64,000 bases of DNA from NCBI GenBank assembly GCA_047495785.1, contig JBLDXI010000032.1:3286001-3350000 (forward strand), read 5' to 3'. Under the pieces are notes generated by a model. The model was not told where the DNA came from and did no database searches. It saw nothing but the letters and a program-made list of their open reading frames with translations. A program made the translations under genes and the position numbers. Shown in pieces: positions 26,947 through 59,000 of this stretch (positions are counted from its first letter, which is position 1; every line of letters starts with the position of its first letter). This stretch comes from Lepidodermella squamata. Lineage: Eukaryota > Animalia > Gastrotricha.

Positions 26947-29435
26947 ATGATGTCAGCTTTATCTCTAATAAGGATCATCTTGATTACAGGGGTGTGCTCG
27001 TCGGTTATTCCAATGAACAGTCTAATGCCGCGCATTCTCAAATCAAGCATTCACAGTGCCAGTCGGAATAAGACGATTCGCATTTTAACGTCGATGTCCT
27101 ACTCCGGCAACCTGCCATTCGGCCCAGCTATAACGGTTCCGCAGCAAATGGCACTGGACTGGCTTCATTCGCAACCAGACTGGCTGCCTGGCTATCGACT
27201 TGAATGCGAATTAATCGACGATTCGGTATAGAAAAACGTGACCTAGAAAATTTATTGCACGCTGCTGTTTGTTATTGAATATAGGTCAACGACGCAATCT
27301 ATTTGTCGCATTTATTGCAAGAGCTTCGAGTTTTCAATGAGGTTGAACTTCGACTGCCATTATTAGGACTCATGGAATATTCGCTATCGAGCTTGTTACA
27401 TTCCGCCTACATGATGAAGTTCTACAACTTGATAGGCGTCAACATCTTCCCGTTGCCGGAAATGTATGGCCTTAGGCACAAATTGACGAATTACTTCCCG
27501 TTTGGAGAAAGGCAGGACTACTACATGGTATCGGAAGCTATTTTCATCGCGAAAATGGGCTGGCACCGCGCGGCCATTCTGACCGATACAAATACGTTCA
27601 ATGTCGTATCAGAATCGCCCCATATTGAAAGTTTGGAGGCTAATAATGTTTCCCTGGTATATTTCGCGAAATTTCGCGAGTACACGACTGATGAATACGA
27701 GTTGGATTCAGCTTTCACTGAGCTGAAACGGCGAGATCCTCGAATTATAATGAATTGCGTTATTAATAGCCTGACAATGGCCTGTTATCTATACAAATAC
27801 GGCATGTATGGACCCGATTACGTAATTATCACCTATTCGTGGACTGGTTTCGACGAAACTTCTGATATACCGGATTTCATCGCTAGTTGGTGTACCAAGA
27901 AAATTCTTCTCGAAGTCCTGGATGGTATGCTGTTTTTCGGCGATGCGCCACTAGCCGACATTTATGGGCCGAATTTCAAGGACATAACTGGCCGAACTCG
28001 GCAGAGCATTATGGACCAAGTAAGGTCAAGTGTTGATCACCCTGAAAAAGCCGTCAGTTTGGACTACTGGGCAGCTATTTACTACGACCGGGGTGTAATT
28101 CTTGGGACAATTTTGAATCACACTGAAAATGCTTTGAAAAATTACAACATGACCCTGTTAGATTGGACAACAAATTCCGGTAATTACGCCCGCGATCCCG
28201 AGTTCATTTTAGACATATTGAAAGAGTCCGTCTATAAGGTGAATCTAAGCGGGGTTCGAGGCGAATGGTCCTACGATCGTTACGACGATTGGCCTAATGG
28301 AAGCATGCCGATTGTCTACACTCAAACGCGGATTATAGACGGAAATCGAAGCATTCAAGAGCCAGTCGCCTATTATAAATCGAATTCAAGGGGCGATAAA
28401 ACGCGCATCTATCAAGATCGGTTCATTTGGCGGACTAAGGATGGGAACCCTCCGAGGGACCGGCTGATAATTGTCAATATCGAAGTAACTCCTATCCCTT
28501 CATTTGTAAGCATCTTGCTCTACGTTGTGGGATGTTCGGAAATTACGGGCATTGCGATCTTAGCTTTGATTTTAACTTATTCGAGCCGCCTTAACCTTTG
28601 GCTATCTGCAGTCCTTATAGCTGACTGTACATTGGCTAGCCAAGTTTTTGCTGTTCCTTACATGGTCGCAAGCCCCAGGCTGGATATCAATTGCTCAGCT
28701 ATTGGAACTATCCTTGTTTTCGGGTTCTCTTGCTTGATTGCCAGTTGCTCTGAAAAGATTCGACGTAGCATTCACATGGCGAGAATTTATCCTAGCGTGA
28801 CTACTTTCAACTTTACTCAAATCAGCGTTTTATTCTACGCCCAAATTTCGATTCCAACCATTCTATTCGTAGCTCTATTAGCCCATCGCCCAATCGAAAC
28901 AGCGCTGAGGAATACAACTGTGGAATTTTCGAAAACAGACGGAAGCTTAGCGTAAAATTATCAGGTTCGAGAATGCCTATTTCTCGAATCGTTTTTCGCT
29001 TCAAACACTTCTCTCGGCTTAATTTCGACCGCTGGACTGATTATATTCGTCTCAATCCTAAGGGCGATATTGCTCTCATTCAAAGGACGATCTTTTCTAA
29101 GCAAGCCCGTTGCCAAAACTAAGCAAAACATTGATACACTGTTGGGTATTATGCAACAATTGAAGTTCGATTGCATCTTCATTTACGGCGTTGTCATTTT
29201 CCTGCTCGGAGGTGTGTTAGTTGGAGCTCTTGTCGGATCCAGCACTGGTTCACTCGCGATTCTTGTTTCAATTTTGGCTCTACTTATCGTGGGAATGAAC
29301 TTTGCGTTAACAGCGGTCGCAATTTTTGCGAGCACGAAAAATGACTATTTTCCCATGAAATTAGCCGCTACGCGGCCGCATGTGACAAATTCCCGACCTT
29401 CAAGGTCCTCATTTCAGCGGAAAAGCATCGCCTAA
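26947..29435 (+). pseudogene. Class C GPCR (GABA-B-like) with one in-frame TAA at 28953-28955
   Basis: Signal peptide, WLPGYRLEC, intron ~27226-27284, MGWHRAAIL, LKRRDPRII, YGPDYVII, WRTKDGNPPRD, TM1-4. After the TAA the same frame continues NYQVRECLF... through TM5-7 to 29435. Confidence 0.7.
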
Positions 29436-29621
29436 TGCCTCGGAATTCAGGGGCAACAGCTGAGCGGCGATAAATCCGCGGTTTCTGAACCTGACCCTGG
29501 ATCATTAGTTATGTGGGAAATCGTACATATGTTGCGCATTAATTTGTGATAAGGTTACTTAATAAAGGTCGCTTTTTAGGCCGATTTGACAGTTTTTCTT
29601 CCAGAGCTATCTAGAGACATA

Positions 29622-30078
29622 ATGGCAACCTTTCTAATCTTGACTGTACTGTTGGCAGTCGCTGCCTCGCCAGCACTCGGAGCTTACACTTGCGATTCGA
29701 AGAAGTACACCCCTTTGGGGGTTTGGTATGGCGAAAGCAAGGAGTGCGTTGCGTTGGTGAAGCACGCCTGCAAGGCCCCGCAAACTTCGCTGTGGGTTCG
29801 CGGCCGTTTGGTCAAAGGTAACAGCATTGCCAAGTACACTGCTATTGCGACCTTCGAGGCTGCAAACAACAAATACGGAGGGCATGCTGCTGTTTATATC
29901 AGCCAAAATAGCGCCGGTATTCAGGTATGTATATTTTCCGATTGTTTCCTCAGTTTAAGATGGATTGCGGATTTAGGTTGTGGATCAATGGAACACCCAG
30001 CCAGCCCATGAACGGACCATTAAATTTGGCGGCAGTGGCGCTTCGAATGACGGCAACAAGTTCTACGTCATCGAATAG
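29622..30078 (+). CDS. Secreted Tae2/BPSL0067-family peptidoglycan amidase (dae2-like), copy 1
   Basis: Exons 29622-29924 and 29977-30078 (52-nt GT-AG intron). Signal peptide followed by ECVALVK..APQTSLWVRGRLVKG..TAIATF..YGGHAAVYISQNSAGIQVVDQW..RTIKF..SNDGNKFYVIE*. Confidence 0.88.
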
Positions 30079-30439
30079 AACTAAAGATGAACTTCTTGAT
30101 TCCGGACATTTAAAAAAATAGATTGCCGAAAGCAAAACTCGCATAACAATCCCAGTTAATTTTTTACAAGGGTTTTAAATAAATCCTTTTTTGAAAACAA
30201 ATGCAGAGGAATTTTCCCAAAATTCAAGCCAGATTTGCCACAGTAAAAACTTGAGACGGATTTGACTTTCGAATTTAATAAAGAACTGCTATGAGGTTAC
30301 AGGTTACAGCTGGATTTCGATTACAGGGAAATTTATTTATTTCAACAACTCTTTTTACAACGATAACATTACCCAGTTAAAACCAAGTCAACCCGATAAC
30401 AGTTATTTCCATTCAGGAAATAACCAATGCCAGTATAGG

Positions 30440-31380
30440 AAAAGGTAGCAACCATAGACATAATTTAAGATGTCTATGGTAGTAGCAACCAACGCGTCTA
30501 GTACTGTGATGAAGCAGCAGCTCGGACACAGGAATACACACAACTGGGGCAGAAGTTCCCAATATATGCGGGGCGTTACTCGCGATGTCATTACAAAAGT
30601 TTTTATCCGTATTGCAATTGTCGGAGCAGCAACGGCAACCCTAAAACGATTCAATTAAATAATTCCGATTTCTCTCAAATTTGAAAAAAACAACTTGGGA
30701 TAACACCTTCGATCCCTCTTTAATCTAAGTGGACACAGTTCGACAGCGGGGCCATGGTTTTTTAGGGTCGTCAGGGTATTCACAAAAGTAAGAAACCAGC
30801 CCAGTACTGAAAACGTACTCTTTCGAAATCATCGAAAGTTTGAAAGTTTAGGAAAATGGATATCAACTTACGCCGCAACGAGAACAATTAGTCAAAGTTA
30901 TCGGAGGTTTAGTTTGATCTAGAATATTGTCCTGGCAGGTTATGAAGTTTATTTTTCGTTCGACGTCCTAGCAGGTAAAGGAAATTGGGATCATCGTGGG
31001 CGCGACAATTATTCACCGAGTTGCACTTGTCAGTACAGCATGAACAAGTCTTGAAAAATCGTTTGAAGCAACATTGAAAACTATTTCAGATCATGGAGTA
31101 CCTTTCTTATGTAAAGACCAGAGGCATCGGCCCTCAAAGAACTGTAGTTGCGGCAAAATGGTTCGGTTAGTTCGGTTTCACAACCGAATTGATCGTTCAT
31201 CCAAAAGTAAGTTCCAGCCGCCTGAGAATACAGGGAGATTTGCTGGGTACATGCCTTGCAACAACTGGCATTTTTCGTGCCCGTATGATCTGTGAAACAG
31301 GTCAGGCTTGCCGATAAATCGAAGTAACGGCAGAGTAAGATAAGCGATGAACTTATTTTTCCAAGATGAGGTAGAGCCGT
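30440..31380 (-). pseudogene. Two-domain Ly6/uPAR (three-finger) gene, type A, pseudogene copy
   Basis: Collinear with 55424-56365, but the start is ACG instead of ATG (31380) and there is a 2-nt deletion near 30967 (gacgtcc|tagc vs gacgtccct|tagc). Confidence 0.75.
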
Positions 31381-31604
31381 AGTCGTTCGCAGCGAAAGAA
31401 ATTCTTATAGCAGGAGCCAAAAACCGAGTGCATTTTCTTGAAAATGTTTTAGCAGCTGTCGAGTCTTTTGTTTGTAAAAAATTGACAAAACGTAAAAATG
31501 CTTCAGTTTATTGCAAGCAGAAATTATTGGAAAAATAAACAAAAAATTAAGGAAGCTGCTTCAGTTGGTGGTCATTGTCAGAATGATCAAAGCAAGACTG
31601 AAGG

Positions 31605-32513
31605 TTACTTTCCCAAAACTCTCCGGCGAAGCAGCAACCAGATGCCGTTAACAGATGCAACAGTTGTTGTTGGTGCTGCTGTTGTCTTAGCCGCGGTCTC
31701 CATTTCAGCTAGCTCAGGGCAAAAGCCATCAGCAGCGTTGCAGTTTTCGGCACAGCATTGACACCCCTGGAAACAATTTGCAGATTTAATTTTACCGATA
31801 TAAAAGAGAAAGCGAACTTTTGCGGCGACTGTGGAGCCTGAATATTCAGTTGATTTGCTGTACCTACAACGAGGCCAAGGTTTTGTGGGATCGACAGGGA
31901 ACGTGCATATGTAGGAGACTGCACCGTCACTAGCCCTGAATTCTTTCTGCATTAAAAATAAAAACGTATTCGGTACCTGCACAGATTTGAAGACTTGCCC
32001 CACATGACGAACAGTTTGTCAGGGTCTGTATCGATTTTCCAGATGAGAAAACGTTGTCTTTGCAGGTAACGAATTTGAACGCCCGTTCATTGTCTCGAAC
32101 AACAGACATGAAAATAGAATCGCCCTCAGCCCAGCAGCTATTCAATTTGTTGCAGTTGTCAGTGCAACAGGTACATTTCTACGTAAGTAAATTAAAGATG
32201 GAATATGTAATCAAGCCACCACTGATCACACCTTCGTGAAGTAAACACCGCTAACGTCCCAGCTAACACTGCTTGAATCTCTGCATGCCGTTTCGGTCGA
32301 ACTTGTGACACAATCGTAAGATGAAGTCCAATAGTAAGTGCCATTTTCGCTTGAATAATCCTTGCTCATCAATGCTGTACATGCCAAGCATCCAGTTGCT
32401 GTTGTATCAGCATTACTCCCTGTGAGGCAAGATATCGCGAGTGAAGATCGGGCGGAGAAAATTCCAAGAAGAAAAATGTGAGTAACAATAATTTGAATAG
32501 TAGAGCTCAGCAT
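31605..32513 (-). CDS. Two-domain Ly6/uPAR (three-finger) protein, type B copy 1, GPI tail lost by frameshift
   Basis: Signal peptide, ISCLTG..CLAC..C..C..CTCCTDNCN and FVTC..CSSC..C..C..CQCCAENCN, four exons. A 5-nt insertion at ~31640-31644 gives the end NGIWLLLRRRVLGK*. Confidence 0.75.
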
Positions 32514-33739
32514 TTTTGTATTTATCAAGGCTAATGAAAAGTGATAGTTTCTAGAATTACAACTTATTTTTCGATTTGATTAATCAAAGTCAGGTTTTAA
32601 GTAAAAGACGAACACATTTTGCTGCATGTAATATATTATAGCGAAATCCTATGAGTGCAAAAAAACGGCGCTTTAGCATGCAGGTGGTTTGGTTACTTTT
32701 CCGCTTTCTAAGTTCCGCTAATTTTTTGAGCTACAATTTTTTCCGCCGAAGACCATTTCCGCTCTTGCGTTTTCCGCTATTGTATGAGTTCCGCCATATC
32801 GTTGGCAGCACGGCAGAAGGAACATACCTATAGGCTTGTTTATATGACGTCAGGCGGTAAAAGTTAATGCGGTCGAAAAAAATTGTCCGATCAATTTACT
32901 TGAACATCGGACAATCGGACAATCGGTGCAATAAAAATGCAGAAAGTTAACGTCAAGTAACATGCGGAAAGTAGTTTTTGCCTTCTATCGTGTCATCTAA
33001 TACGAAGCGCATACTAATGTAATAGTAGTAAAAACTGATAACAATAAAAATTTGAAGTTGTAAAAGTAAGTTGAATGAAATTACCTTTAACAAGTGAAAA
33101 ATGGGGTTTTGCGTATTTTCTGTAGTGTGTTCTGTAGTGTGACTTTAAGTGGGGCGATTCCTACATTTTCTTACTTAGATTTTCTTGAAGATTTTGAATA
33201 AAAAAGAAATATGACCTCTAGGAGGCTCCCATCCTTCTCAAAGACGCGAGATCCCAAAGTGTCGCCGAATCGGCTTATCGATTTCGACTGACGCGAAAGC
33301 ATTCCATCAAATTCTTAGAGCGGCTGCAAAATCTCACGATGTCAAAGATTTCACCAAACCCCACTTTTCACTTATTAGCGGATTTTATTTCAGCGGAAAT
33401 GTCCTGTGGAGGCAATGTTGTGATTCATGCAGCTGAATACTATTTTGGTGGATACCTATTCATTTAGCGGACATTTTAGGGTAAAAATAAACAAGCGTTG
33501 ATTCTAAGGCGGACGCTAAGGTAAAAACCCGTCTGCAAATGATACAGATAATCCTCATCAAACGGCGTTGTCGTGCTGCATCTATATATGTAGCTGACGT
33601 AATGACTTCCACCGCTGCAACTTCATGGCGCATATACTATGACGAGACGAGATAAAAGAGGCGTTATTTCACCCTTTCTTTCAATTTCCAAATTTCACTC
33701 CACTGCCTGAGAACACCTAATTAACTTCTCATTCCTTTT

Positions 33740-33870
33740 ACGGTGTTGTCATTCTCCTGCCCGGAGCTCTTGTTGGATCAATCACTGCTACATCTGCGTT
33801 CCTCGTTTCATTTTTGGCTCTAATTATCGTGGGCATGAATGCCACGTTAACAGGGGTCGCAATAATTGCG
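33740..33870 (+). pseudogene. Duplicated 3' fragment (TM6-TM7) of the 26947-29435 GPCR
   Basis: cggtgttgtcattctcctgc...ggagctcttgt...gtttca.ttttggctcta.ttatcgtggg.atgaa...gttaacag.ggtcgcaat matches 29186-29330. Confidence 0.75.
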
Positions 33871-34134
33871 GGAATTCGGGGATTATCCCTGCTCCAACGA
33901 CGGGCAGAAAACGTCGCTAGCCCATATTTGAGTTAACCCTGGACCATTTTCTGACTATTTATACACTCATTACTTACATTCGAATAATATGCTGGTTTAT
34001 TGAGTTGCAAAACCGAACCCGAAGCCAATAATGCACTAATCAGGGAGCGCTTATTTATGATCTTTAATATCTTTTATAAAGGTTGGTTTTAGGCCGATCT
34101 GACAGTTTTTCTTCCAGAGCTATCTAGAGACATA

Positions 34135-34586
34135 ATGGCAACCTTTCTAACCTTGACTGTATTGCTGGCAGTCGGTGCCTTGCCAGCATTCGGAGCCTAC
34201 ACCTGCGATTCGGTTACTTTGGGAAGATGGTATGGAGAAAGCAGGGAGTGCGCTGCACTGGTGAAGTACGCCTGCAAGGCCCCGCATACGTTGCAGTGGA
34301 AACGCGGCCGTTTGGTCAAAGGTAGCAGCGTTGCGAAGAACACTGCTATTGCGACCTTCGAGGCACCTGGCAACAAATATGGTGGGCATGCTGCTATTTA
34401 TATCAGTCAAAATAATGTCGGCATTCAGGTATGATATTTTCCTTCATCTTCCTCAGTTTAAGATGGAATGCGGAATTATAGGTTGTGGAGCAATGGAACA
34501 CCCGGGCAGCTCAGACGAGGACTATTCGTTTTATTGGCGGCGATGGCGCTTCGAATGACGGCACCAAGTTCTACGTCATCGAATAG
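34135..34586 (+). CDS. dae2-like peptidoglycan amidase, copy 2
   Basis: Exons 34135-34428 and 34482-34586. ECAALVK...TAIATF...YGGHAAIYISQNNVGIQVVEQW...SNDGTKFYVIE*. Confidence 0.87.
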
Positions 34587-34949
34587 AACAAAAGATGAAC
34601 TTATTGATCCGGACATTTCAAAAAATAAGACTGGCAAACTTTATGAGCAGGGTTCTGAAGTAACCTGAAATCTGACCTACATTTTATCCAGATTTTCCCA
34701 AGTGATTTTCCCAAGTGAGATTGAGATTGATTTGACTTCAGAATTTAATAAAGAATTGTTATGATATATAATATAATAATATTTAATTATTTAATCGACA
34801 AGTTTTACAGCAACGAAAACTCAACCAAGTTAAAACTGCAAGTCAAACTGATAAAATTAATGGTAATTGAACTTAGGTATATATGGATCTCGAAGATTTT
34901 CCTGGCTTGTGATGAAGTAAATTTTCCGTTTAACTTTCATAGTTTTTCA

Positions 34950-35430
34950 TACTTTCATAGAAAAATTCATAGTTTTCGACGCTATTTGACACTAATTGCC
35001 ATTCATCCCGATCTCTAGCCGTTATTTCCGCTAATTCTAGATCCGCAATTCTGTGAATTTCAGTGTGTCGCATTAGCAGGGTCGACTTACAAGGTCTGCC
35101 GCGTCTAACAGGCTCGTTTGGGTTTTTAATATGTCTCACATGAATTTCGAACAAACCAATTTTAAGAAGACACCAACTCGGGTCGACCGCTTTCCAATAA
35201 TACATAGCATTCGAGAGACTTTCCATGTCATACTCACCTTGGTGAGCTATGTGGCTGAAATATTTCAAACGATGTTTTTCGATTATTTTGCTCAATTCCG
35301 AAACGTCACAGATCAATCTAATTTCGATGTTCATAGTTATATGGTCTGTTCTGAAAATCCCATAATGGTTCTAAGCCAGCGCATAAAAGTAGCATTATAT
35401 TTAATCTTCTTGTTCTTGGGTAGTGGATGA
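34950..35430 (-). mobile_element. Decayed 3' fragment of the RTE-like LINE (same family as 41265-43275)
   Basis: ATFMRWLRTIMG, IRLICDV, YYWKAVDPSW, RRGRP, ARDRDEW match the C-terminus of the 41265 ORF. Confidence 0.85.
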
Positions 35431-35436
35431 ATTCCA

Positions 35437-37085
35437 GAGTTGCGTTTTTTATGGTGTCCGAGAAGCGATTGTTCAACGCTGTGATCAATATTTCGGACAC
35501 CTCCGCAACACAGAACTAACAATCAAGTATTTAGACTGGAGCTGTCCGAGCTCGAGAGGCAAACAGTTAAGACTAATCACGCCCCGACTTGATTAGATTA
35601 AGCCTTGACAAATCGAGACATGGTTGTAATTAATTTACGACATATCGCCATCTGACCCTCGTTAACTTATGACGACGTGCCATACCATAGAGATGATAGA
35701 GTGCTCACTCGCAGCTAAGAGGGTGGAACGCTATGGGCACCAGATGGCAGGGGATTAACTCATTGTCCTGGGGGAAAAAACTGAACTAATTACAATTCGA
35801 TCGATTGCACTTATTGCTCGATTTCTCGCTTCGATTGCTGGGGCCGAAGCCGAGCGTCGAGTCATTTATTCTTTGAAAGACGACGGATTTTTTTATACCA
35901 AATTTGGTCCAGAAATCTTTTCAGAACTGGTTGAAAGGTGGCCGAGAAGTAAAATTGAGAAAATCGCATTTCTCTTTCCAGGTACTTAACACCTGAAAAC
36001 AAGGCGAAATTGAAGGATGTTTTGAAGCCATTTTGTTCGCCAGGTCGAGACGATCATTTCGACACCTGATTTAGATCTGGGGACGCCATATTTCGATCGC
36101 TACAAATTTTCGAAATCAAAATACCTTAAAAATCTATTTATTTGCGTGAACGACGCTGACACGACGATGATTCATCGCCATAAAATCTCTCAAATCCAAA
36201 ATTTGGCGCAAAATAGCTCTTTCTGAAAATATTACGCAACAATGCTTTTAAGCTTCAATTTTTTTAAATAAATGGCAAATAAATAGATTTTGAAGGTATT
36301 TTAATTTCAAAAATTTGTAGCGATCAAAATAAGGCATCCCCAGATCTAAATCAGGTGTCGAAATGATCGTCTCGACCTGGCGAACAAAATGGCTTCAAAA
36401 CATCCTTCAATTTTACCTTAGTCTCAGGTGTGGACCGCTCCAAACGGTCCGGGTCCAAAGTGGACGTTGACTTCTCGGTCGCTTTTTGATCACTTCTAAA
36501 AAAGCTACCTGGGCAAATTTGGTACCAAAAAATCCGCCGTCTTTCAAAGAATAAATGACTCGACGCTCGGCTTCGGCCCCAGCAATCGAAGCGAGAAATC
36601 GAGCAATAAGTGCAATCGATCGAATTGTAATTAGTTCAGTTTTTTCCCCCAGGACAATGAGTTAATCCCCTGCCATCTGGTGCCCATAGCGTTCCACCCT
36701 CTTAGCTGCGAGTGAGCACTCTATCATCTCTATGTGCCATACGGTCAATTTGTAGCCAAACCTCGTGGGGAAGCCTTTTTTATTTCGTTGGCAATATCCG
36801 CCAAAAATCGAGGGAAATATTGAAATTTGAAATTTTTTGAAATTTACCGAAAATTCTCAATTTTAACTGTCAACTGGCGATTATTTTGAATCCAAATTTG
36901 TCAAATAACTCGGAGTTCAGTATTTCTGAATTTAAAGTTTAACGATTGCTTTGAAAAGCATAAGCTAAGTTATGTGTGTCATCTGGTGTTAATTGATATA
37001 ATTAGCCGGCGGACACCATAAAAAACGAGTGTCCTCTGTTACATTGATGACCATAAAAAATCAAACACCATAAAAAACGCAACTC
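35437..37085. mobile_element. Non-autonomous DNA-transposon-like element with 21-bp GAG...CTC terminal inverted repeats, hosting the P-like foldback
   Basis: gagttgcgttttttatggtgt (35437) pairs with acaccataaaaaacgcaactc (ending 37085). No clear TSD. Confidence 0.55.
35686..36734. mobile_element. P-superfamily (Galileo/foldback-like) non-autonomous element
   Basis: CATAGAGATGATAGAG...CTCTATCATCTCTATG termini. Exact 8-bp TSD tgccatac (35678-35685 and 36735-36742). About 197-bp perfect arms, with imperfect pairing continuing to ~36145/36275. Confidence 0.85.
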
Positions 37086-37209
37086 AGCATAGACATCGAT
37101 GTCTATGCTGAGTTGCGTTTTTTATGGTGTTTGATTTATGTCTATGCTGAGTTGCGTTTTTTATGGTGTTTGATTTTTTATGGTCATCAATGTAACAGAT
37201 CGGACACTC
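37027..37209. repeat. Spacerless palindrome with an internal 39-bp tandem duplication
   Basis: Centre agacatc|gatgtct at 37097/37098 with 40-bp perfect arms; pairing resumes after the duplicated 39-mer. Confidence 0.8.
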
Positions 37210-37565
37210 ACGCACTGCCTGTTTACGTTAAACCATAAATTTGCACACTAAATTGAATGCATTGATTTAAAAGGTGAAAATAGTCGTAGGCCTCGGAATT
37301 TTTTGAAACTTGGACCTAAAAATTCCTCATCTTTCAAGGATGCTAGTGATGCAAACTTCGGGGTGCGGTTCCTTCCCTATGATTTTTAAATTAGGAAAAA
37401 AGATTGTAGCGATTTTTGTCAGTTGTTAAGTCTATTTTCAAGTTTTTTTTTTAGCGCCACTCAAAATTTGATTGTTACGAAAAACGAACATCTGTGGCAT
37501 ACTTCATTTTTATTGCTATTTTTCAGCTTTTGAATTTAAGTTGATCGAAAAATAGTAGATAGATA

Positions 37566-39059: not shown

Positions 39060-39100
39060 TATCAAAATAGAAAAAAATTGAAGCGTTTTTCATTTTTCAT

Positions 39101-39720: not shown

Positions 39721-39759
39721 TTAAATCATGAAGCTGATTTGTTTACCAATTGTTTACCC

Positions 39760-44622: not shown

Positions 44623-44731
44623 AGTCGTTCGCAGCGTGTTTGCAAAATAAAGCGTGACAAAACGTAAAAATGCTTCAGTTTATTGCAAGAAAAAATCATC
44701 GAAAAAGTAACAAGAAATTAAGGAAGCTGCT

Positions 44732-47333: not shown

Positions 47334-50300
47334 ATGCACCTGGTTAGGTTTCTCGGCCTCTTAATCGGGGTTGCTCTGCTGACCGGCCTAAGCAACACCA
47401 AATGGCTGCCGGTAAGGCTTGAACAATTTCGAAAACATCCTAATCTGTCCTAATCCTATCTTTTCATTAGAATGAAGATGGGAGTATTATTTGTCCTGAA
47501 GGAAAAGTGATCAGACAAGGGGACATCTGCGATGGTTACACCGATTGTAAAGATGAAAGCGACGAAATAGGGTGCATCTGTAAGGAGAATGAGGTCCGCT
47601 GCAATAACACGCGCTGCATTCGAAAAAGGTTGGACATCTTTCGCATTAACGGCCCATAATTTACGATTAAATTGTTTTTCTTTCCAGCTACATTTGTGAC
47701 GGTTACAAGACGTGCACTGATGGTAGTGACGAGTGGGATTGTCCGCCCTGCGCCGCCAATGAATTTCGATGTGCCAGCACCAAATGCATCAACGAAACTC
47801 AGCGCTGCGATGGCAATTTCGACTGCAGTGGGCTAGATGATGAGCTTAACTGCACATGTGAGTTAAATTAGCAGCTTTCAACAATTCCAGCTACAGTGTT
47901 GTGTGTTGTGTATAGCTTGCAGGCCAACTCACTTCCACTGCGAGACCGACAGGTGCATTTCTAGCGTTTTTCAGTGCGACGGTAACGACGATTGCAAAGA
48001 TGATTCATCTAGTGACGAGGATGCAACGATGTGCGAAGCCTACACTTGCCCGGAAGATCGATTCCGTTGCAATGACAACATATGCATTCCTAACTACAGG
48101 GTCTGCGATGGCATTGTACATTGCGAGGATGATGAACTGCAAAATTGCACCTGTTCGGCTGACCAGTTTGAATGCAAGATTCTTCATCAGTGCCTTGCCA
48201 GCCGGAGCTTGCAATGTAACGGCGTAAAGGATTGCTTCGATGGATCCGATGAACTCAACTGCGAAACTGTAAGCTAGATTAATTGATAGACATTACAGAT
48301 CAATTAAAAGCTTCAACGCTTAAATAGTGTCCGATATCCACTCATTTCCACTGCGAAAATGGGACCAAGTGCATACCCGATTTGTAAGAATTTTTAGGAT
48401 TTAAGAGCTCATAGTGTCACTCTTAAATTTCATTGTTTTATAGGAGCTATTGCGATAGGGTCCAAGACTGCGATGATGGAAGTGACGAGCGCTGTACAGA
48501 CTGTCCCGCTTTCTCCAAATTCAAATGCGCTAATTCTTCAAAATGCATCTCCATGAGGTTTGATTGATTTTCTGCGCCAATCTATTAATCAAACGGCTAT
48601 TTTTATTAGTTTCCGTTGTGATGGGGATCAGGTATAATAATTATGAGGTCTATTAAAATACTTACAAGAGTTTTTTCTAGGATTGTGGGACGGACGATTT
48701 GTCTGACGAAATGAACTGTCCACCATGCCCAGAATTCACTTGTGCCAACGGAAAATGTATGAATAATTCTACAATTTGCAACGGCCAGAGGGATTGCTCA
48801 GATGGCAGTGATGAGCAAAATTGCTCAGGTTACATATCGGATATCGCAGCAACTTCTTAGTGAATGGAGGAAATTTACTCTTTTGTGTAGAATGCTACTT
48901 CGACGGATTTTTATGCGCAAACAAACGATGTGTTCAATCGTCTTATCGGTAAAAATTTCGGCTTGTTTTATTCAGTTATTACGCATTTCTCATGAAGATG
49001 CGATGGCGAGAATGACTGCATCGATAGTTCTGACGAGATCGATTGCTTGAACATTCCTTGCGATAACAGCACGCGTTTCCATTGTTCCGATGGATTATGC
49101 ATCCCACAAACGCGACGTTGCGATGGTATAAAGCACTGTTCGGATGACGAAATCAGCTGCCCATGCAGCGGCTTCACTTGTGGCGATGGAACATGCATTC
49201 TTGCCCGCAGCCAGTGTGACGGAAGAAAGGATTGCAGGGACGGATCTGACGAAAATTGCGATGACCCATCAGTATTCATTTGCCTGCGGTGAATAGCTAA
49301 TAAGCCCTTTTAAATTTTATTCCTAGGAATGCCCTACAGGTCGCCCATATTTATGCAATGGCACTACTAACTGCATTCCATCATCGTAGTTTTTGACAAT
49401 TTCCCTTGTTTTCCCATCCGTATTTATCCGCTGCTCAGGTTTGTATGCGATGGTGTGGCCGACTGTCCTACTGGAGACGATGACGATGAAGCAATCTGTG
49501 ACTCGTGCACTTATTTCGGAAATGACGCCAGAACATGGAAATGTGGCAATTCTACAAAATGTGTTAAGCTAAGTGACCGCTGCGATGGCTACAACGACTG
49601 CAATAACAATGCTGACGAACAAAACTGCTTAGGCTGGCCTTGTGCCGATAATAGATTTCAATGCAGCGACGGCATTTGCCTAAAACAAATGCAAGTCTGC
49701 GATTCGACTAGAAACTGCGCGAACGACGAGGTCAACTGCACGTGCAATAGCTTCCAAACAACATGCCCTTCAGGTGATTGCGTTTTCTTGTCAGCATTTT
49801 GCGACGGTAAGGTGGATTGCTACGACGGTTGGGACGAGTCGAACTGCACCATGGTAAATAAGACTATAACCATACGAAGAAGTTCCATTTTGATTTCGTT
49901 TATCATTTTAACCAGTGTCCAAACGCCGATGATTACAAGTGTAACAATTCTACAAAATGCATAGCGGCAAGATACGTCTGTGATAGAAGTACCGATTGTC
50001 CGTTCGGCGACGACCAAAGCAACTGCGACGTTTGCCCACCAGACAGACCTTTTAAATGTGCCAATGCTAGCACTTGCCTTCCTGCTTAGTGAGTCATTCT
50101 TGCTATTGATAGACGGCTCGTGTAAACTTTATAATACAATAGTTACGTCTGCGATGGAGATCCGGTAGGTTATTCTTGGAATCATAATCTGCGGTAATAA
50201 AAGATCCGTTTGAAATTTAGGATTGCGGAAACGGAGACATGTCTGATGAAATATGCCCGCCGTGCTCAGCTGACGAGTTCCGATGCTCGACTGGCAGGTG

Positions 50301-50451: not shown

Positions 50452-51020
50452 ATACCGAACCCTATACCGAACCCTTAACCTGCCAGTACTAGGAGTTGTT
50501 TATGCCATGTTTATATGATTGAGCTTCAATGGAATAATAAAGAATCAGACAATATCGTGTTTACCGCTTTAGATCTTATAGTTTTTGAACTAAGGGCCCT
50601 ACAAGGCAATAAGTGAGGCCTGAACAATATGTAAAACAATATCGATTCAACGAAAATTCACGAGTTTTTTCTTTTTCATGGTGGCATTAGTGCGGTCCCC
50701 GCGTTTATTTTTGAATCGACCTACAGCGCACGATGAATTAATTGTTAGGGAAAACTAGCCGTTTGCGGCAATTTAATAGCCGGCGGAAACCCCCGCTGAT
50801 CCGTAAATGTGCCTTATTAAGTTATATGGCTATAATTTGAGTTAAAGCTCGAAACTAGTTCATCATAACGTGCGATGACTGTTTACGCACATCAGTAGCT
50901 TCCACACCACCACGTATGTTGAAATGCTAATGGCCATCAAGGTGCCGATGGGCTTCAATAGAAAGTAAGATTATATACCCATGCTTGGTTTCAGACACAT
51001 TTTTTCTCAAAACAATTGAA

Positions 51021-53562
51021 ATGCACTTCGTAAGGTTTCTTGGCCTCCTACTCGGGTTGGCGCTCTTTACTTGTTTAACTAATACTAAATTGATATTTGT
51101 AAGTCCTGAACTTTTCAGCAGACATTCTAATCTGTCGCATTGTGCCTTTCGAAGAGCGGAAATAGCGGTAAATGCCCTGATGGAGATGTGATTTGGCGAG
51201 GGGAAATCTGCGATGGTTTCGCTCAGTGTAGTGATGAAAGTGACGAAATGGACTGCCCTTGCACGGATGAACAGTTCCGCTGTAACAACACACGCTGCAT
51301 TCATAAGGGGCAAGTATTTATAAACCTGATGGCATTGTTTTTAATCAACTTAATCTATGAAGCCTCGTTTGTGACTTCTCCAAGTCTTGTGGTGATGGCA
51401 GTGACGAGTGGGATTGCCCGCCTTGTGCTACTAACGAATTTCGATGCACTAACAACAGGTGCATCAACGAAACCCTGCGCTGTGATGGCAAAAACGATTG
51501 CAATGGTGGAGAGGATGAAGCTAACTGTACATGTGAGTGGATGAAACAATTAAAAGAATCTAGCAAGAAACAAGACTTTCAAATGATTTTTAGCATGCGG
51601 GCCACGTGGATTTCACTGTAAAACCGGCTTATGCATTAAGGCTTCTTACCTTTGCGACGGTGAAGACGATTGCGAAGATGGCTCTGCAAGTGATGAAGAT
51701 CCAACAATCTGCAATACCTACACTTGCCCGGAAGATCGATTCCATTGCAGTGATAATAAATGCATTCCAAAATACAGGGTCTGCAATGGTGTTGTCAATT
51801 GCGCGGATGATGAATTTCAAAACTGTAACTGCACGACGGACCAGTTCGAATGCAAGATTCGGAAGCAGTGCATACCGGAGAGCTATCAGTGCGATGGTAA
51901 AAAAGATTGCCTCGACGGTACCGATGAACTCAACTGCGAAACGGTAAATTCCATTCATTAATGCAACGAGTAGCAATTTACATACTTAACCAGTGCCCAA
52001 TACCTGGTTTCTTTCACTGCGATAATGTTAACAAATGCATACCTGATTGGTAAAATTTTCAAAGAGCTCGTCCTATTCAAAAATTATACTTTATTTTATA
52101 CTGAGGAAATACTGCAATACGGTCGATGACTGTGGTGACGGCAGCGACGAGCGTTGTGAGGAATGTCCTGCATTTTCCAAGTTCAAGTGTACCAATTCTA
52201 CTAAATGCATCTATAACTAGTTAGCTAGATTATTAGCTAAAATAACATATATCCGTATTTTCTCATTCTTAGCCTCCGATGTAATGGCGATCGTGTAAAG
52301 CCTTGCCCATTTTTGATATTGAGATTTCATACGATTTGATAGGATTGTGGTGATAACGACATATCTGACGAAATTAACTGCCCACCATGCCCAGAATTTA
52401 CCTGCGCCAGCAATCGAAGATGCGTCAAGAATGCCGTTGTTTGTGACGGCTCGTCCGACTGCTTGGATAGCTCGGATGAAACAAATTGCTGGAATGTTCA
52501 GTGTGACAATTCTTCGCGTTTCCGTTGCTCCGATGGATTATGCATCTTACAGTCGCGTCGTTGCGATGGCTACAAACATTGCTCAAATGACGAAATCGAT
52601 TGTCCTTGCAAGGGCTTTATTTGTGGCGATGGAACCTGCCTAACTGCGGAAAGTCAGTGCAATGGAGCCAAGGAATGCACAGACGGATCTGACGAGATAT
52701 TATGTATCGATTCAGCGGTAATAAGATTTGACCATGAACATATATCATACGGAATTGCTCGTTGATTTAATTCTTAGAAATGCCCTGTTGGACGCCCTTT
52801 TTTATGCAGCGGCACAACGAAATGCATTGCATCTTCGTAAATTTCCAACAGTAGCTTAGTCTCGTGAGTTTAATCCCTTTTTTCTAGGCGCCTTTGCAAT
52901 GGTGCGGCTGACTGCTCCACTGGGGATGACGAAGCGGCCTGCGCTTCATGCATTCTTTCTGCTGCTGACGAAAGAACGTGGAAGTGTGGCAATTCTACAC
53001 AATGCGTTAAGCGAAGTCATCGCTGCAATGGCCACACTTACGACTGCTTGAACAATGCTGACGAAGAATACTGTAACTGAACTGAAATATCAATATTCTT
53101 TCGTGAGAAGCGTTAGTGCTGCAAGGAGCCACTTCTAATATTATTAACAGTTAACATAACGTATTCAATAATTACGTTGAGAAGAATGCTGATGAAAATA
53201 AACGACATCTGTGGTGAGGCGCCTTGATAATGCCAATTGCTAAACGTTGAAAATCGGTGATTATGCTGGCCTTGTGCGTGTGATGGTAGATTCCGAAGCA
53301 GTGACGGCATTTGTCTCCATCGATTCGGAGTATGCGATTCAATAAAAAACTGTGCGAACGACGAGGTCAACTGCACTTGCACGCATTCAAACAAGATGCC
53401 CTTCAAGGTATTGCGTTTCATTCACAGCGTTTCGCGACGGAAAAGCGGATTGCTACGACGGCTGGGAAGAGTCGAACTGCACTACTGTAAGATTCGAAGG
53501 CTTTAATCTGGCCCATGGTGGGTCGTTAAACTTCTAGTGCCCGAACGCTGATTATTACAGTG
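51021..53562 (+). pseudogene. Second LDLa-repeat gene, disrupted paralog
   Basis: Same signal exon and repeat order with one repeat deleted. Insertion at ~53075-53260, frameshift and Cys losses near 53290-53440, truncated at ~53562. Confidence 0.72.
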
Positions 53563-53564
53563 AC

Positions 53565-53830: not shown

Positions 53831-54221
53831 TACAGGCAAGCAGTTAGATTCTATCTGCCATGTGTTATGAAACGGAAACGTTCATAACAACAGCGGAAAT
53901 GTCCTCATAAGGCAGTGTTTGATTCTTGATTAATCGCAGCGGAAGAGTATATTAGCGGAAATGCATTTAGCTGACATACATTTCAAGGTAAAATTTACAA
54001 ACGGAAATTCTAAAGCGGACGCTAAGAGGTGAAACCCAATACACAAATGATACAGATGATTCTCACCAAACGGCTTTGTCGTGCTGATGTAGCTGATGTA
54101 ATAACTTTATGCCATATACTAAAACGAGACCAACAGAAAAGAGCGATATTCCATTTTTTCTTTCATTTTACAAATTTCACTCCGCCAACTCCGCCTGACA
54201 ACGCCAACTTTTCATTCCTTT

Positions 54222-54340
54222 TACCGCGTTCTCATTCTCCTGCTCTGAGGCGTGTTAGTTGGAGCTCTTGTCGCATCAATAAGCCCTGCTTCGCTCGCGA
54301 TTATTGTTTCAACTTTGTCCCTACTAATCGTGGGTTCAGA
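54222..54340 (+). pseudogene. Second duplicated TM6-TM7 fragment of the class C GPCR
   Basis: gtgttagttggagctcttgtcg...ctcgcgatt.ttgtttcaa.tttg..cta.t.atcgtggg matches 29213-29293. Confidence 0.72.
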
Positions 54341-54633
54341 CAATTTTTTCGGGATTTCGGCGATCACCCCTGCTTCAACGACAGCATCTCGGCGAGAATA
54401 CTTTGCTATCCCAAATTTGAGTGAAGAAACTGAACCATTTACAGGCTGACCTATCGTGAAAAGGACCCTAGCTCCATTACTTAAATTTGATTAAACATTT
54501 AGTTTATGGAGTTGCAAAACCGACGCGAAGTCCACACTAATGCGCAACTCAGCGAGCGTTAGATTATGATAAGGCCACCGGCCACCTGATAAAGGTTGTC
54601 TTTTAGGCTGACTTTACAAAACTTACCGACATA

Positions 54634-55103
54634 ATGGCAACTTTTCTAACCTTGACTGTATTGCTGGCAGTCGCTGCCTTGCCAGCATTCGGAGCCTACA
54701 TCTGCAATTCAAGTAAGTATACGCCTTTGGGAGCTTGGTATGGCGAAAGCAGGGAGTGCGTTGCGTTGGTGAAGTTCGCCTGCGGGGCCCCGCAAACGGC
54801 GCAGTGGAAACGCGGCCGTTTGGTCAAAGGTAGCAACGTTACCAAGTTCACTGCTATTGCGACCTTCGAGGCTGCTAACAACAAATACAAAGGACACGCT
54901 GCTGTTTATATCGGTCAAAATAAAGACGGTATTCAGGTATGCTATTTTCCTTTATTTTCCTCAATTTATAAGATGGATTGCGGATTTAGGTTGTGGATCA
55001 ATGGAACACCCCGCCAGCTGTGGCAGCTCACCAGCGGACCATTCGTTTTATTGGCGGCAATGGAATTTCGAATGACGGCACCAAATTCTACGTCATCGAA
55101 TAG
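54634..55103 (+). CDS. dae2-like peptidoglycan amidase, copy 3
   Basis: Exons 54634-54936 and 54990-55103. ECVALVK...TAIATF...YKGHAAVYIGQNKDGIQVVDQW...SNDGTKFYVIE*. Confidence 0.88.
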
Positions 55104-55423
55104 AACCTAAGATGAACTTCTAGAGCCGGAAAGAATTGATTGCTAAAGGCAAATTTCGTATAAAAAAAACTGACACAGTGAAACCGTTTTATGAGAGTTT
55201 AAGGTGCCCTACAAGTATACGTAAATTTAAACAATATTTTCCCGAGTTAGAAATGGAGACTGATTCGACTTCGAAATTAATAAATGATTTCTATGATTTT
55301 AAAGCGAACACAATTTATTTAATAACAATTTTAACAACGATAACCTAAACTAGCTAAAACCGTATAAGTCAACCCGACCAAAGCACTTTGCATTCGGGAA
55401 ATTAGCTATAAACTTGGGGGTAA

Positions 55424-56365
55424 CTATCTCGTAAAAACTAATGCAAGAATGGGAAGAGGTAGCAACCAAAGCGTCCAGTTCTTTGATGAAGCAGAAGCTC
55501 GCACGCATGATAACACAACAGGGGCAGAAGTTCCCCATACCGGGGCGTTATTCGCAACGTCATTACAAAAGTTTTTATCGGTATTGCAATTGTCGGAGCA
55601 GCAACGGCAACCCTAAAATCGATTCAGTTACATAATTACGACTTTTCTTAGACATTTGCAAGAAACAACCTGGGATAACTCCTTCGATCCCTCTTTAATA
55701 GAAGTAGACACAGTTCGACAACGGGGCCATGGTTTTTTAGGATCTTCAGGGTATTCACAAAAGTAAGAAACCAGTCCAGTACTGAAAACGTACTCTTTCT
55801 ACATCATCGAAATCGTCGGAAACTTACAAAATTAGCAAACTATTGATCAACTTACGCCACAACGAGAGCAATTCGTCAAAGTAATCGGAGGTTTAGTTTG
55901 ATCTCGAAGATTGTCCTGGCACGTGATGAAGTTAATTTTCCGTTCGACGTCCCTTAGCAGGTAAATGAAATTGGGATCATCATGGGCGCGACAAGTATTC
56001 ACCGAGTTGCACTTTTCAGTACAGCATGAACATGTCTTAAAAAATCGTTTGAAGTAAAATTGAAAGAAGTAAATTTTATGGAGCACCTTTCTTATGTAAA
56101 GACCAGAAGCATCGGCTCTCAAAGAGCTGTAGTTGCGACAAACTGGTTCGGTTAGTTCGGTTTCGCAACCGAATTGATCGTTCCAAAAGTAAGTTCCAGC
56201 CGCCTGAGAATAATCCAGGGAGATTTGCTGGGTACATGCCTTGCAACAATTGGCACTTTTCGTGCCCGTATGATCTGTGAAACAGGTAAGGCATGCCGAT
56301 AAATCGAAGTAACAGCAGATAATTAAAAGCGATGAGATTATTTTTCCAAGATGAGGTAGAGCCAT
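55424..56365 (-). CDS. Two-domain three-finger protein, type A, intact, GPI-type tail
   Basis: MALPHLGK signal peptide; LTCF..CCKAC..C..C..CSCCTEKCN; FITC..CSRC..C..C..CRCCSDNCN; tail ...SSKNWTLWLLPLPILALVFTR*. Confidence 0.8.
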
Positions 56366-56576
56366 AGTCGTTCGCAGCGAAAGAAATTCTTATAGCAGGA
56401 GCCAAAAACTGAGTGCATTTTCTTGAAATTGTTTTAGCAGCTGTCGAGTCTTTTGTTTGCAAAAAATTGACAAAACGTAAAAATGCTTCGTTTATTGCAA
56501 GAAAAATCATCGAAAAAATTAAGGAAGCTGCTTCAGTTGGTGGCCATTGTCAGAATGATAAGAGCAAGACTGAAGG

Positions 56577-57447
56577 TTAATTTCCCGAACTTTCCGGCGA
56601 AGAAGCAACCTCTTTGACAGATGCAACAGTTGTTGTGGGTGCTGCTGTTGTCTTAGCTGCGATCTCGACTAGCTCAGGGCAAAAGCTATCGGCTGCGTTG
56701 CAGTTGTCGTAACAGCATTGACATCCCTTAAGACGATTTGCAATTCTAAATTAAGTTTAAAAAAGAATTATAACTTACGGTTGTGGTAAATGGATAAGGT
56801 GATTCTCCGCAACGGGCCCAAGGTTTCGTTGGATCGGCAGGGAATACGCATACGTAGGAGATAGCATCTTCACCAGCCCTGATTGTTTTCTGCATACAAA
56901 TTAAAATAAGCCTATTCATCGACTCGGCAGATTTGAAGACTTGCCACACATGACGAGCAATTTCTTAGGGTCAGCATCGATCTATCTGGTGAGAAAACGT
57001 TGTCTTTGCAGGTAACGAATTTGATCGTCCGTTCATATCGTCGAACGAGAGACTTGAAATCACGATCTTCCTCTGCCGAGCAGCTCAATTTGTTGCAGTT
57101 TTCAGAGCAACATTTACATTTCTGCGTAAACAAATTCAAGATGTAATCAAATCATCATTAACGCACACCTTCCTGAAGTTGAGACCTCTTGGGTCAGCAG
57201 TAACAGACATTGAATAATGGCATTCTTCGGTCGAATTTGTGACACAGTCGTAAGACGTTGTCGAATAGTAAGTGCCATTTTCTCTTGAATAATCCTTGCT
57301 CAAGAATGCTGTACACGCCAAGCAATCAGTTGCTGTTGTAGTACCATCACTTCCTGTGAAGCAGGTTATCGCGAGTGAAGATGGCGCGCAGAAAATTACA
57401 AGAAGGAAAACGTGAGAAACAGTAACTTGAATAGTAGAGCTCAGCAT
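56577..57447 (-). CDS. Two-domain three-finger protein, type B copy 4, GPI tail lost by 1-nt deletion
   Basis: Four exons otherwise intact; ends ...VKEVASSPESSGN*. The old hydrophobic tail is still present out of frame to 56533. Confidence 0.75.
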
Positions 57448-58045
57448 TTGTTTTTATTAAGGCCTATAGAACGCGATAATTTTCTAGAATTATAACTTTT
57501 TTATCGATTGGATTAATAAAATTCAAGATTCATCTAAAAGACGAACAAATTTAGCGTAATCCTATAGGTATAAGGTGAATATTTGTGTGAAAAAGCGGCG
57601 CTTTAGCATGCAGGTACTACAACATGGCTCTCTTACTAAAATTACTAGGTGAACATTCCGTAGGCCACGAGAGCCATGCGTGCTGCGTGGAAGAATAGCA
57701 CCTTGGCTTGTACTATCATAAAAATTGCGATTTGTGGATACTGCCTACTTCGGGAATTTCACATCGAAAGAGGAATTTTTACGGAAATATTAGCGGTAAA
57801 ATATTCTCCACTTGTCCTAATCGGAAAATTGCCTCTTATGCAGCATTGATTAGGTCTAGATTCAGTTGAGAGTTCAAGGCCATTTGTATCCAAGGATGAA
57901 GTTCGAAGCCTCCAGTTCATCATAAAAATGACATGAAGATCGACTGAAATGGTTAAAATTTATTTTACAGTAAATTACCAGGGAAATTCAAAGCAAAATT
58001 ATCACACTCAGAAGCAAGAATAATATCAATTAAAAGAAGGCTGAA

Positions 58046-59000
58046 TTAATTGGTCATGATGATTTTGGCAAAAATAGAAATCGCCCAAAGGTTCAGTACT
58101 CCGATTCTTTCAAGTGACGATGCCATCCCTTTCCCGGATGCAGTTGTTGTTGCCGCCGTGGTCGAAGCCATCAGTTCACGTAGCTCAGGGCAAAAAGCGT
58201 CATTCGAGTTGCAATTTGCCGTGCAGCATTGGCATGACTAAAAAATCCAAAATTACCTTCACCCAATTTTAGAATAAAAAAACGAACCTTGGCTGTTGTC
58301 GTAGAGCCTGAGGAATACTTTGTTGTGCTGTTTTTACAGCGAGCCCATGGTTTGGTCGGTTCGGAAGGGAAGGCACATACATAGGAGACAGATGCCGATC
58401 CTATTCTGAATTCTTTCTGTTTTATAAAACCATATCTGAGTTTTTGCGTGATTTTTTCAAATTTGTTTACCGAACAATAAGAGCAGTTAGTAAGGGTTTG
58501 CATCGATTTTGTTGGCGAGAAGACATTGTCTGCGCAAGTTATAAAATTGATCTTGCGTTCATGATCCCGAACTAGAGACGTGAAATTCGGGTCGTCATTC
58601 GTAGAGCAGCTGCCAACTTTGTTACAGTTATCAGCGCAACAGGTACATTTCTGTGGGGGTAAATTGGACAAAACCTTCACTCAGAGCAAAAAACTGGCAG
58701 CTTTATTTTACTCACCTTTAAAAAGTAAAGACCGGTGTCAATACTTGCTTCAATCATGCTTGACTCTTTGCACGTTGGTTCGGTCGAATTGGTTACGCAG
58801 TCGTAGGATGAAGTCCAGAGGTAAGTGCCGTTGGCGGTTGAATACTCCTTATTCACAGTCGCGGTACAAGCCAGGCATCCTAATGCAAGAGACGCTCCGT
58901 TACTACCCGTCAGACAAGTGATCCCATGCGATACGGGTGCCAATAAAATTCTCAGCAACAGGACTCTCAAAACATGATAATTCAAATTTAATTTAGTCAT
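58046..59000 (-). CDS. Two-domain three-finger protein, type C, GPI-type tail
   Basis: ITCLTG..CLAC..; CTCCADNCN; CQCCTANCN; tail ...RIGVLNLWAISIFAKIIMTN*. Confidence 0.8.

Follow-up and report, generated by a model that had tools for sequence, protein, structure and literature searches.

Within a stretch of 64,000 nucleotides (nt) of contig JBLDXI010000032.1 from the gastrotrich Lepidodermella squamata, hereafter the window, three copies of an amidase gene (dae2A, dae2B and dae2C) sit within 25 kb. The reading that we favour, with a probability of roughly 0.7, is that they are a locally amplified cluster of dae2 genes of bacterial type VI secretion system (T6SS) origin in an animal-type genome, and that the neighbouring genes copied along with them, including two types (A and B) of cysteine-rich genes, are passengers tied to dae2 by position only. 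All three amidase genes are intact (Table 1), each having an open frame, a predicted signal peptide and a single GT-AG intron of 52-53 nt at the identical codon, and they have stayed so while many of the sequences duplicated with them decayed.

Identity and relatives of the amidase

Amidase searches were carried out exon by exon, with single exons or natural read-through open reading frames (ORFs) as queries. The NCBIfam model NF033857 (BPSL0067/Tae2) scored 51, 49.5 and 47.5 bits against exon 1 of dae2A, dae2B and dae2C, respectively, at a cut-off of 27 (E = 1.5e-13 for dae2A), and exon 1 matched PDB entry 6WIN, Tae2 of Salmonella Typhi, at E = 2.2e-6; both results bear out the dae-type amidase call made in an earlier note on this DNA. 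None of the Pfam models detected the dae2 amidase. Cys42 and His88 of dae2A aligned on Cys23 and His73 of 6WIN, the two residues named as catalytic by the depositors of that structure (10.1101/2020.04.10.036376), and neither column varied among the three copies and two eukaryotic relatives. Exon 2 encodes VVDQW...SNDG.KFYVIE, of which the DQW motif is common to 6WIN, as traced via the full-length relative P0001. The motif reads VVDQW in dae2A and dae2C and VVEQW in dae2B, EQW being found likewise in the bacterial relative L064; a catalytic role of the Asp is assumed. These features assign the dae2 genes to Tae2/Dae2 (the BPSL0067 family of papain-like NlpC/P60 amidases), and, from what is known of that family, the proteins would be secreted and would cleave the peptide cross-links of bacterial cell walls, in the manner of tick Dae2 and Nematostella Dae4.

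The first 21 residues form what was judged by eye to be a typical signal peptide, with a hydrophobic core and an A-x-G cleavage motif. The amidase domain spans the whole of the remaining protein (113-117 mature residues versus 116 in the bacterial relative), and the mature N-terminus, AYTCDS, aligns with the bacterial start MSYV/MAYV, which indicates that a secretion signal was added just upstream of the old start. The genes around dae2 are of animal type (SLOG/TRPM, Cys-loop, 7tm_3 and LDLa), and introns in the neighbouring genes measure 49-65 nt; overall, the gene content of the contig and its introns of ~50 nt are of invertebrate type. Rfam and tRNA scans of the window gave no match.

The window's own proteins were absent from the protein collections searched by words, and the word search with the amidase returned only a Nematostelium gracile transcriptome protein (57-60% identical) and a Hexamita inflata protein annotated as 'BPSL0067 family protein' (50-54%). 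A metagenome scan with the amidase yielded 80 loci, of which the closest were L004 (59-62%) and L005 (62%), followed by L001 to L003 (52%); most of the others look bacterial. The genes of L001 to L005 are intronless, and a signal peptide-like start is present in L001, L002, L004 and L005. Because its contig, which is intron-poor, also encodes kinesin, F-box and ankyrin genes, L004 is of eukaryotic origin. The L001 gene (L001:1293-1682) keeps the old bacterial start Met right behind its signal peptide, L003 has no signal peptide, and the L004 gene lies at L004:9635-10015; these three loci on eukaryote-like contigs look like snapshots of how secretion was gained.

In a scan of bacterial genomes, the closest relative was L081, a 116-amino-acid (aa) protein of Enterobacteriaceae bacterium B14 (DF158882.1) that is 55-58% identical to the window amidases. 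The gene order at this locus (L081:367-3649) is vipB (E = 6e-136), hcp (E = 1e-35), the tae2-like gene and an overlapping ORF of 125 aa, so that the tae2-like gene occupies the classic T6SS effector position; the overlapping ORF, in which no Pfam family was found, is probably the immunity gene. Pfam identified no informative domain in the N-terminal part of two long bacterial fusion proteins, L064 and L077. In every related locus the equivalent of exon 2 runs on uninterrupted from exon 1, and the intron was therefore gained in the window lineage. A FastTree phylogeny of the exon 1 region (~80 columns) placed the three window copies in one clade with support of 0.86 and 0.97, which argues that they multiplied in place after acquisition; deeper nodes were not resolved, since only ~80 exon 1 columns were available to place them.

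Comparable transfers have been described. Dae2 of ticks and mites is a secreted antibacterial amidase (10.1101/2020.04.10.036376), and dae2 or dae2-like genes are reported to have been duplicated after transfer in Ixodes scapularis and I. ricinus (10.64898/2026.03.13.711553; 10.1101/2020.04.10.036376). Set beside published descriptions of tick Dae2, window dae2 is alike in its Tae2 parent family, its predicted secretion, its Cys-His pair and its retention after transfer into an animal, but differs in having three tandem intron-bearing copies in 25 kb, in a host whose other proteins lack close relatives in the databases searched; the nearest sequences that we found for it came from protists and from an enterobacterial T6SS cluster. 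Relative to bacterial Tae2 (6WIN; L081), the Cys, His and DQW positions correspond and L081 has a nearly identical C-terminus (SNDG..FYVIE), whereas the window genes have a predicted signal peptide and an intron and no adjoining hcp, vipB or immunity ORF. Dae4 of Nematostella vectensis, encoded by two genes, is antibacterial and induced by immune signalling (10.1101/2021.05.13.443009); it is likewise a domesticated T6SS amidase of a non-arthropod animal but differs in its parent family (Tae4, not Tae2). In the ladybird genes cwh1 and cwh2, a bacterial cell-wall hydrolase gained introns and, in cwh2, a signal peptide, stands among eukaryotic neighbours and forms recent tandem duplicates ~8 kb apart (PMC7807722), the same combination of transfer, intron and signal-peptide gain and tandem duplication as for window dae2 but in an unrelated fold (Hydrolase_2).

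The repeated unit and retention of the amidase copies

A unit of ~3.5 kb, consisting of the tail of a receptor gene, dae2 and two convergent cysteine-rich genes, occurs at 29.2-32.7 kb (unit A) and 54.2-57.6 kb (unit C) with ~80% identity, and its left half is present a third time at 33.4-34.6 kb (unit B). Self-BLAST of the window aligned 29616-32685 with 54628-57615 (79.6% over 3.1 kb), 29559-30120 with 34073-34627 (83.8%) and 33391-34613 with 53891-55130 (72%), in agreement with the earlier note, which had described a unit of G-protein-coupled receptor (GPCR) tail, dae, type A and type B genes at ~29.2-32.7 and ~54.2-57.6 kb. The pair of type A and type B genes occurs four times (31.0-32.6, 39.8-41.3, 44.4-45.8 and 56.0-57.5 kb), and the right-half copy at 44361-45847, the older fifth type B gene at 58046-59000 and the solitary 5' relic at 46319-46578 were absent from that note. 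It had also claimed that the partners of the third unit were displaced by a transposon island: the pair at 39.8-41.3 kb is indeed there, but the island could be shown only in part, as a fragment of a reverse-transcriptase element and a palindrome.

In a three-way alignment, unit A matches the other two units only from ~29180 on, its identity to units B and C climbing from ~0.45 to 0.68-0.77 at the start of the receptor tail. The flank common to the second and third units matches over ~340 nt (33362-33703 versus 53886-54191, with 0.69-0.85 identity per 100 columns) and has no match upstream of unit A; common non-coding flanks, previously placed at 33390-33730 and 53890-54220, are thus confirmed, limited to these two units. 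The left breakpoint falls within a receptor exon, so that the unit is bounded by position and not by function, and only the last two receptor helices were duplicated. Copies B and C of the receptor tail are dead relics and thereby show that the duplication ran through a gene, unit A being the original arrangement.

Nei-Gojobori counts, summed over per-exon codon alignments, gave synonymous divergence (dS) of 0.21-0.31 and nonsynonymous divergence (dN) of 0.13-0.14 for the dae2 pairs; dN/dS, one of the checks that the earlier note had proposed, was 0.44-0.66, with Fisher p values of 0.003, 0.026 and 0.17 for the three pairs. Divergence (K) was 0.12-0.18 in the dae2 coding sequence (CDS) versus 0.28-0.46 in the common flank, receptor relics, spacers and 3' regions. 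All indels in the dae2 CDS are of 3 or 9 nt and hence in frame, whereas frameshifting indels occur at 0.013-0.020 per nt in the non-coding parts (approximately one per 50-75 nt). At that rate 5-8 frameshifting indels would be expected per dae2 CDS pair, and the probability of finding none is 0.005-0.0004. Retention of the three amidases by selection is therefore well supported. The open amidase frames and the broken neighbour copies also substantiate the claim that the three amidases stayed intact while many neighbours decayed, and the proposed selection for amidase dosage or diversity fits this retention. Receptor and cysteine-rich copies as old as the retained amidases have decayed, which argues that selection acted on the amidase alone.

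The dae2 intron is conserved as strongly as the CDS, as is a 167-nt intergenic stretch. In the intergenic stretch that separates type A from type B (31381-31560 versus 56366-56532), K is 0.056, compared with 0.14-0.43 in the rest of the unit, and exon 1 of type A is ~92% identical over 31119-31394, 44361-44636 and 56109-56379, two of these three copies being pseudogenes. The high identity of the intergenic stretch and of type A exon 1 could be due to gene conversion or to a constrained regulatory element.

Passengers or partners

The history that we propose for the locus would begin with acquisition of a bacterial T6SS amidase gene, to which a signal peptide would have been added upstream of the old start and in which an intron would have been gained. 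Unequal exchange, as the breakpoints suggest, would then have copied a segment of 3.5-4.5 kb that by chance took in the final 250 nt of the receptor gene upstream together with two convergent cysteine-rich genes downstream. The amidase copies were then retained under purifying selection, the receptor pieces died immediately, and most cysteine-rich copies decayed or lost parts through further duplications and retroelement insertion. The three paralogues (dN of 0.13-0.14 per site) may provide a higher dose or a wider substrate range.

Pathogens (defence) and food bacteria (digestion) are indistinguishable as targets from sequence data. A digestive role, in which a small bacterivorous animal lyses ingested bacteria and the duplications answered dietary demand, is a possible but distinctly less likely reading; it is a live alternative to defence because the closest relatives among eukaryotes belong to protists that feed on bacteria or to protist-like contigs (Nematostelium gracile, Hexamita inflata and L004), and no immune-type promoter motif was found, kappaB-like sites being at chance level, none of them in a promoter and none common to amidase and cysteine-rich genes. 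Nothing in the sequence separates digestion from defence, however, and defence is the role of both animal Daes characterised so far (10.1101/2020.04.10.036376; 10.1101/2021.05.13.443009).

The earlier note had proposed that the cysteine-rich genes and nearby LDLa genes may be partners of the amidase. All cysteine-rich genes lie on the minus strand, convergent on the amidases, and type A adjoins the amidase. Gene models built from splice sites and paralogue alignments have four exons of 93-95, 60, 43 and 62-69 codons (258-266 codons in total) and introns of 49-65 nt, and the predicted product consists of a signal peptide, two ten-cysteine domains each closing in CxCCxxxCN, a Ser/Thr stalk and a hydrophobic tail; they are accordingly not the single-domain Ly6/uPAR (LU) genes first described. 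The domain-end motifs, read by eye, are KCTCCSDKCN, TCSCCTEKCN and GCQCCADNCN, with ten Cys per domain, and fit the consensus for a Ly6/uPAR domain, eight to ten Cys ending in CC-x(3-5)-C-N. CD59 and the two-domain PLI-gamma are examples of Ly6/uPAR proteins; with these and with LYPD8 the window proteins share the CxCCxxxCN end, the signal peptide, the Ser/Thr stalk and the hydrophobic C-terminal tail, whereas the N-terminal cysteine spacing of window type B departs from the canonical CxxC start. This arrangement suggests a two-domain Ly6/uPAR-like protein anchored by glycosylphosphatidylinositol (GPI).

Of the 'LU/three-finger' label, the cysteine pattern (..CxCCxxxCN) stood, but no profile, homology search or model confirmed it. 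Pfam gave nothing at E = 0.1 against the cysteine-rich pieces and nothing at E = 10 over 12 pieces, a word search with the proteins returned 0 matches, and a profile of 12 pieces found no match at E <= 0.001 among 1.84 billion proteins. AlphaFold2 modelling of a read-through ORF, the sole contiguous sequence to span a whole domain but one whose 17 intron-coded residues put the model at a disadvantage, reached a predicted local distance difference test (pLDDT) score of 35.4 from the single sequence and 39.9 with paralogues, with residues 24-71 all-beta at pLDDT 51-61; a Foldseek search of the model against the PDB gave nothing at E <= 0.001. The cysteine-rich proteins are probably a lineage-restricted, GPI-anchored surface family. 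A dN/dS of 0.24-0.44 among the intact copies indicates that the family is functional, and as a selected, probably GPI-anchored group with no relatives detected in these searches it is of modest separate interest.

The state of the copies is uneven. Type A survives intact in a single copy out of four, the other three being dead, and among the five type B copies two are intact, one is open with a GCAGGT donor, one is tail-less and one is dead. A full intact pair stands beside none of the three amidases: next to dae2A, type A is dead and type B has lost its tail; dae2B borders on 5 kb of other sequence; and next to dae2C, type A is intact and type B dead. No amidase accompanies the cysteine-rich loci at 44.4-45.8 and 58.0-59.0 kb. 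Type A copy C and dae2C converge, a gap of 320 nt separating their stop codons, and only ~35 nt lie between the AATAAA of dae2C (plus strand, ~55279) and that of the type A gene (minus strand, ~55319-55314); the 3' ends of the two transcripts probably meet or overlap. In type B, the donor of exon 2 (minus strand) is GCAAGT in copies A (31998) and C (56944), GCAGGT in D (45176) and GT in B and E; the GC donors may belong to GC-AG introns, and the one in D may instead be a splice site that has been weakened.

It is very unlikely that the amidase and the convergent cysteine-rich (perhaps also LDLa) proteins are a functional antibacterial cassette amplified as a unit, its partners being co-secreted effectors, bacterial binders, tethers or inhibitors. 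Co-duplication at least twice, purifying selection on the intact cysteine-rich genes, the near contact of dae2C with type A copy C at the 3' side, and the precedent of LYPD8, a GPI-anchored Ly6/PLAUR protein that acts on bacteria (PMC5725809), speak for such a cassette. Against it stand the breakpoint inside a receptor exon, the lack of any amidase with a full intact pair, the cysteine-rich loci without amidase, the position of amidase and cysteine-rich genes on opposite strands with separate promoters and no common kappaB-like site, and the putative status of the three-finger fold. Linkage is also lacking: when the cysteine-rich, receptor and LDLa pieces were compared by tblastn with the 80 metagenome amidase loci, none of which comes from a close relative of the host, only the amidase matched. 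The cysteine-rich and LDLa genes as module partners are accordingly not upheld.

The same holds for the likeness to bacterial effector-immunity pairs of the Tae2-Tai2 type. The genes are convergent and not co-oriented, and their retention is uneven; furthermore, animals have no peptidoglycan to protect, so that the host needs no immunity protein and the analogy is weakly motivated. We consider it very unlikely that the orphan two-domain proteins are real amidase partners, binding bacteria or holding the enzyme at the cell surface, in a cassette amplified as a unit. If they were, a stolen bacterial toxin would have become the core of a two-component antibacterial cassette assembled by an animal, and the uneven decay of the copies would reflect subfunctionalisation and not hitch-hiking.

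Bacterial contamination or assembly duplication as the source of the amidase copies is a negligible prospect, since, even though the protein family is bacterial and the window proteins are absent from the protein collections, each copy has a spliceosomal intron and a predicted signal peptide, the copies are flanked by animal-type genes and retroelements on a single contig of even GC content (0.40-0.45 over the window), and the unit copies, being 14-25% diverged, are true paralogues and neither assembly nor haplotig artefacts, which contradicts the assembly artefact that the earlier note had named as a possible refutation.

Several observations weigh against a cluster of selected amidases with passenger neighbours. 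For an enzyme, a dN/dS of ~0.5 is on the high side, and in one pair the ratio does not fall significantly below 1. Conservation of the intron and the intergenic stretch at the level of the CDS hints at gene conversion, which would blur the dating. In dae2B, Glu replaces the conserved Asp of DQW, and this copy may be less active. The intact cysteine-rich genes are under purifying selection themselves, and the tail-to-tail position of type A copy C and dae2C makes a functional link conceivable.

Few instances of an animal adopting an antibacterial weapon of bacteria are as clear as the domesticated T6SS amidases, and to these the window locus adds a seemingly undescribed lineage in which three tandem paralogues are under selection. 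The locus places three steps of domestication side by side, namely a signal peptide upstream of the old start, intron gain and local amplification, and the receptor and cysteine-rich copies of the same age serve as a natural internal control for amidase retention. Current understanding of Dae biology is unchanged by it.

Receptor gene and other features of the window

Table 1. Positions of the amidase genes, the duplicated sequences and other elements in the window.
Feature	Position	Strand	Remarks
Class C-like receptor gene beside dae2A	26947-29435	+	ANF_receptor-like ectodomain, seven hydrophobic helices
Receptor-tail source (helices 6-7)	29180-29435	+	marks left breakpoint; three-way alignment
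dae2A	exon 1 29622-29924, intron 29925-29976 (GT..AG), exon 2 29977-30078 including stop	+	134 codons
Type A copy A, pseudogene	30443-31380	-	ATG to ACG, 2-nt deletion in exon 2, stop in exon 3, acceptor CG
Type B copy A	31561-32513	-	exons 1-3 intact; frameshift in exon 4 removes hydrophobic tail
Non-coding flank common to second and third units only	33362-33730 versus 53886-54218		self-BLAST, alignment; K = 0.28
Receptor-tail relic, copy B	33731-33935	+	open frame; stop directly upstream, no start, 15-nt deletion
dae2B	exon 1 34135-34428, intron 34429-34481, exon 2 34482-34586 including stop	+	132 codons
Stretch between dae2B and next cysteine-rich pair	34630-39758		5.1 kb
5'-truncated relative of reverse-transcriptase element	34930-35522	-	
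1-kb palindrome	35686-36734		arms 268 and 157 nt, 93% complementary
Perfect palindromes	37035-37199		40-62 nt
Type A copy B, truncated pseudogene	39759-40076	-	frameshifted exon 1 and start of exon 2
Type B copy B, intact	41205-40924, 40870-40691, 40635-40507, 40457-40248	-	266 codons
Open reverse-transcriptase ORF	41265-43046	+	593 aa; Pfam RVT_1 E = 6.6e-36
Type A copy D, exon 1 only	44361-44622	-	Cys-to-Arg change; truncated at ~44361
Type B copy D, open frame	44732-45692	-	266 codons; exon 2 donor GCAGGT, non-canonical
Solitary relic of type B 5' end and its upstream region	46319-46578	-	70-78% to 32468-32685, 45647-45853, 57402-57646
Two tandem paralogous LDL-receptor class A repeat genes	47306-49964, 50993-53490	+	outside repeated unit
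Receptor-tail relic, copy C	54219-54425	+	in-frame TGA, 20-nt deletion
dae2C	exon 1 54634-54936, intron 54937-54989, exon 2 54990-55103 including stop	+	138 codons
Type A copy C, sole intact type A	56365-56087, 56035-55856, 55798-55670, 55612-55424	-	258 codons
Type B copy C, pseudogene	56533-57447	-	exon 3 minus 14 nt; several frameshifts in exon 4
Type B-like gene E, intact, old paralogue	58046-59000	-	261 codons; dS ~1.4 to others

The receptor gene whose tail was copied contains an ORF (27303-28955) that scored 24.4 bits against Pfam ANF_receptor, just below the cut-off of 25.4, and that is paralogous (BLASTP E = 2e-13) to the gene at 12657-14999, which passes both 7tm_3 and ANF_receptor. 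A word search of protein collections with the 550-aa receptor ORF gave no match, and the copied tail had no significant similarity of its own to the 12657-14999 paralogue, nor any other match. The fragment had been labelled 'class C GPCR TM6-7' (transmembrane helices 6 and 7); this label is positional, in that the ORF upstream has the paralogy just described and the tail spans the sixth and seventh hydrophobic helices. A single in-frame TAA (28953-28955) lies between helices 4 and 5, and helices 5-7 continue in the same frame to 29435; the gene may be a recent nonsense pseudogene or may be read through.

The palindromes downstream of dae2B look like a foldback or MITE-like (miniature inverted-repeat transposable element) sequence, and the rest of 34630-39758 showed no recognisable family. 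The open RVT_1 ORF stands between two cysteine-rich pairs that are 90% identical, and the retroelement may still be active in the genome. Ldl_recept_a was detected in four ORFs, at E = 2.8e-24, 8.8e-15, 3e-12 and 1.6e-5.

Tandem families of sensory and channel genes are abundant in the region. SLOG domains (LSDAT_euk, E = 1e-44) occur in at least three TRPM-like genes at 7715-20520 and 61723-63945 (minus strand), and the paralogue at 12657-14999 is a second, single-exon class C receptor. The first part of the window (1-5163) holds duplicates of a Cys-loop receptor ligand-binding exon, one direct (1-950 versus 4205-5163, 88%) and one inverted (1-781 versus 3549-2781, 80%).

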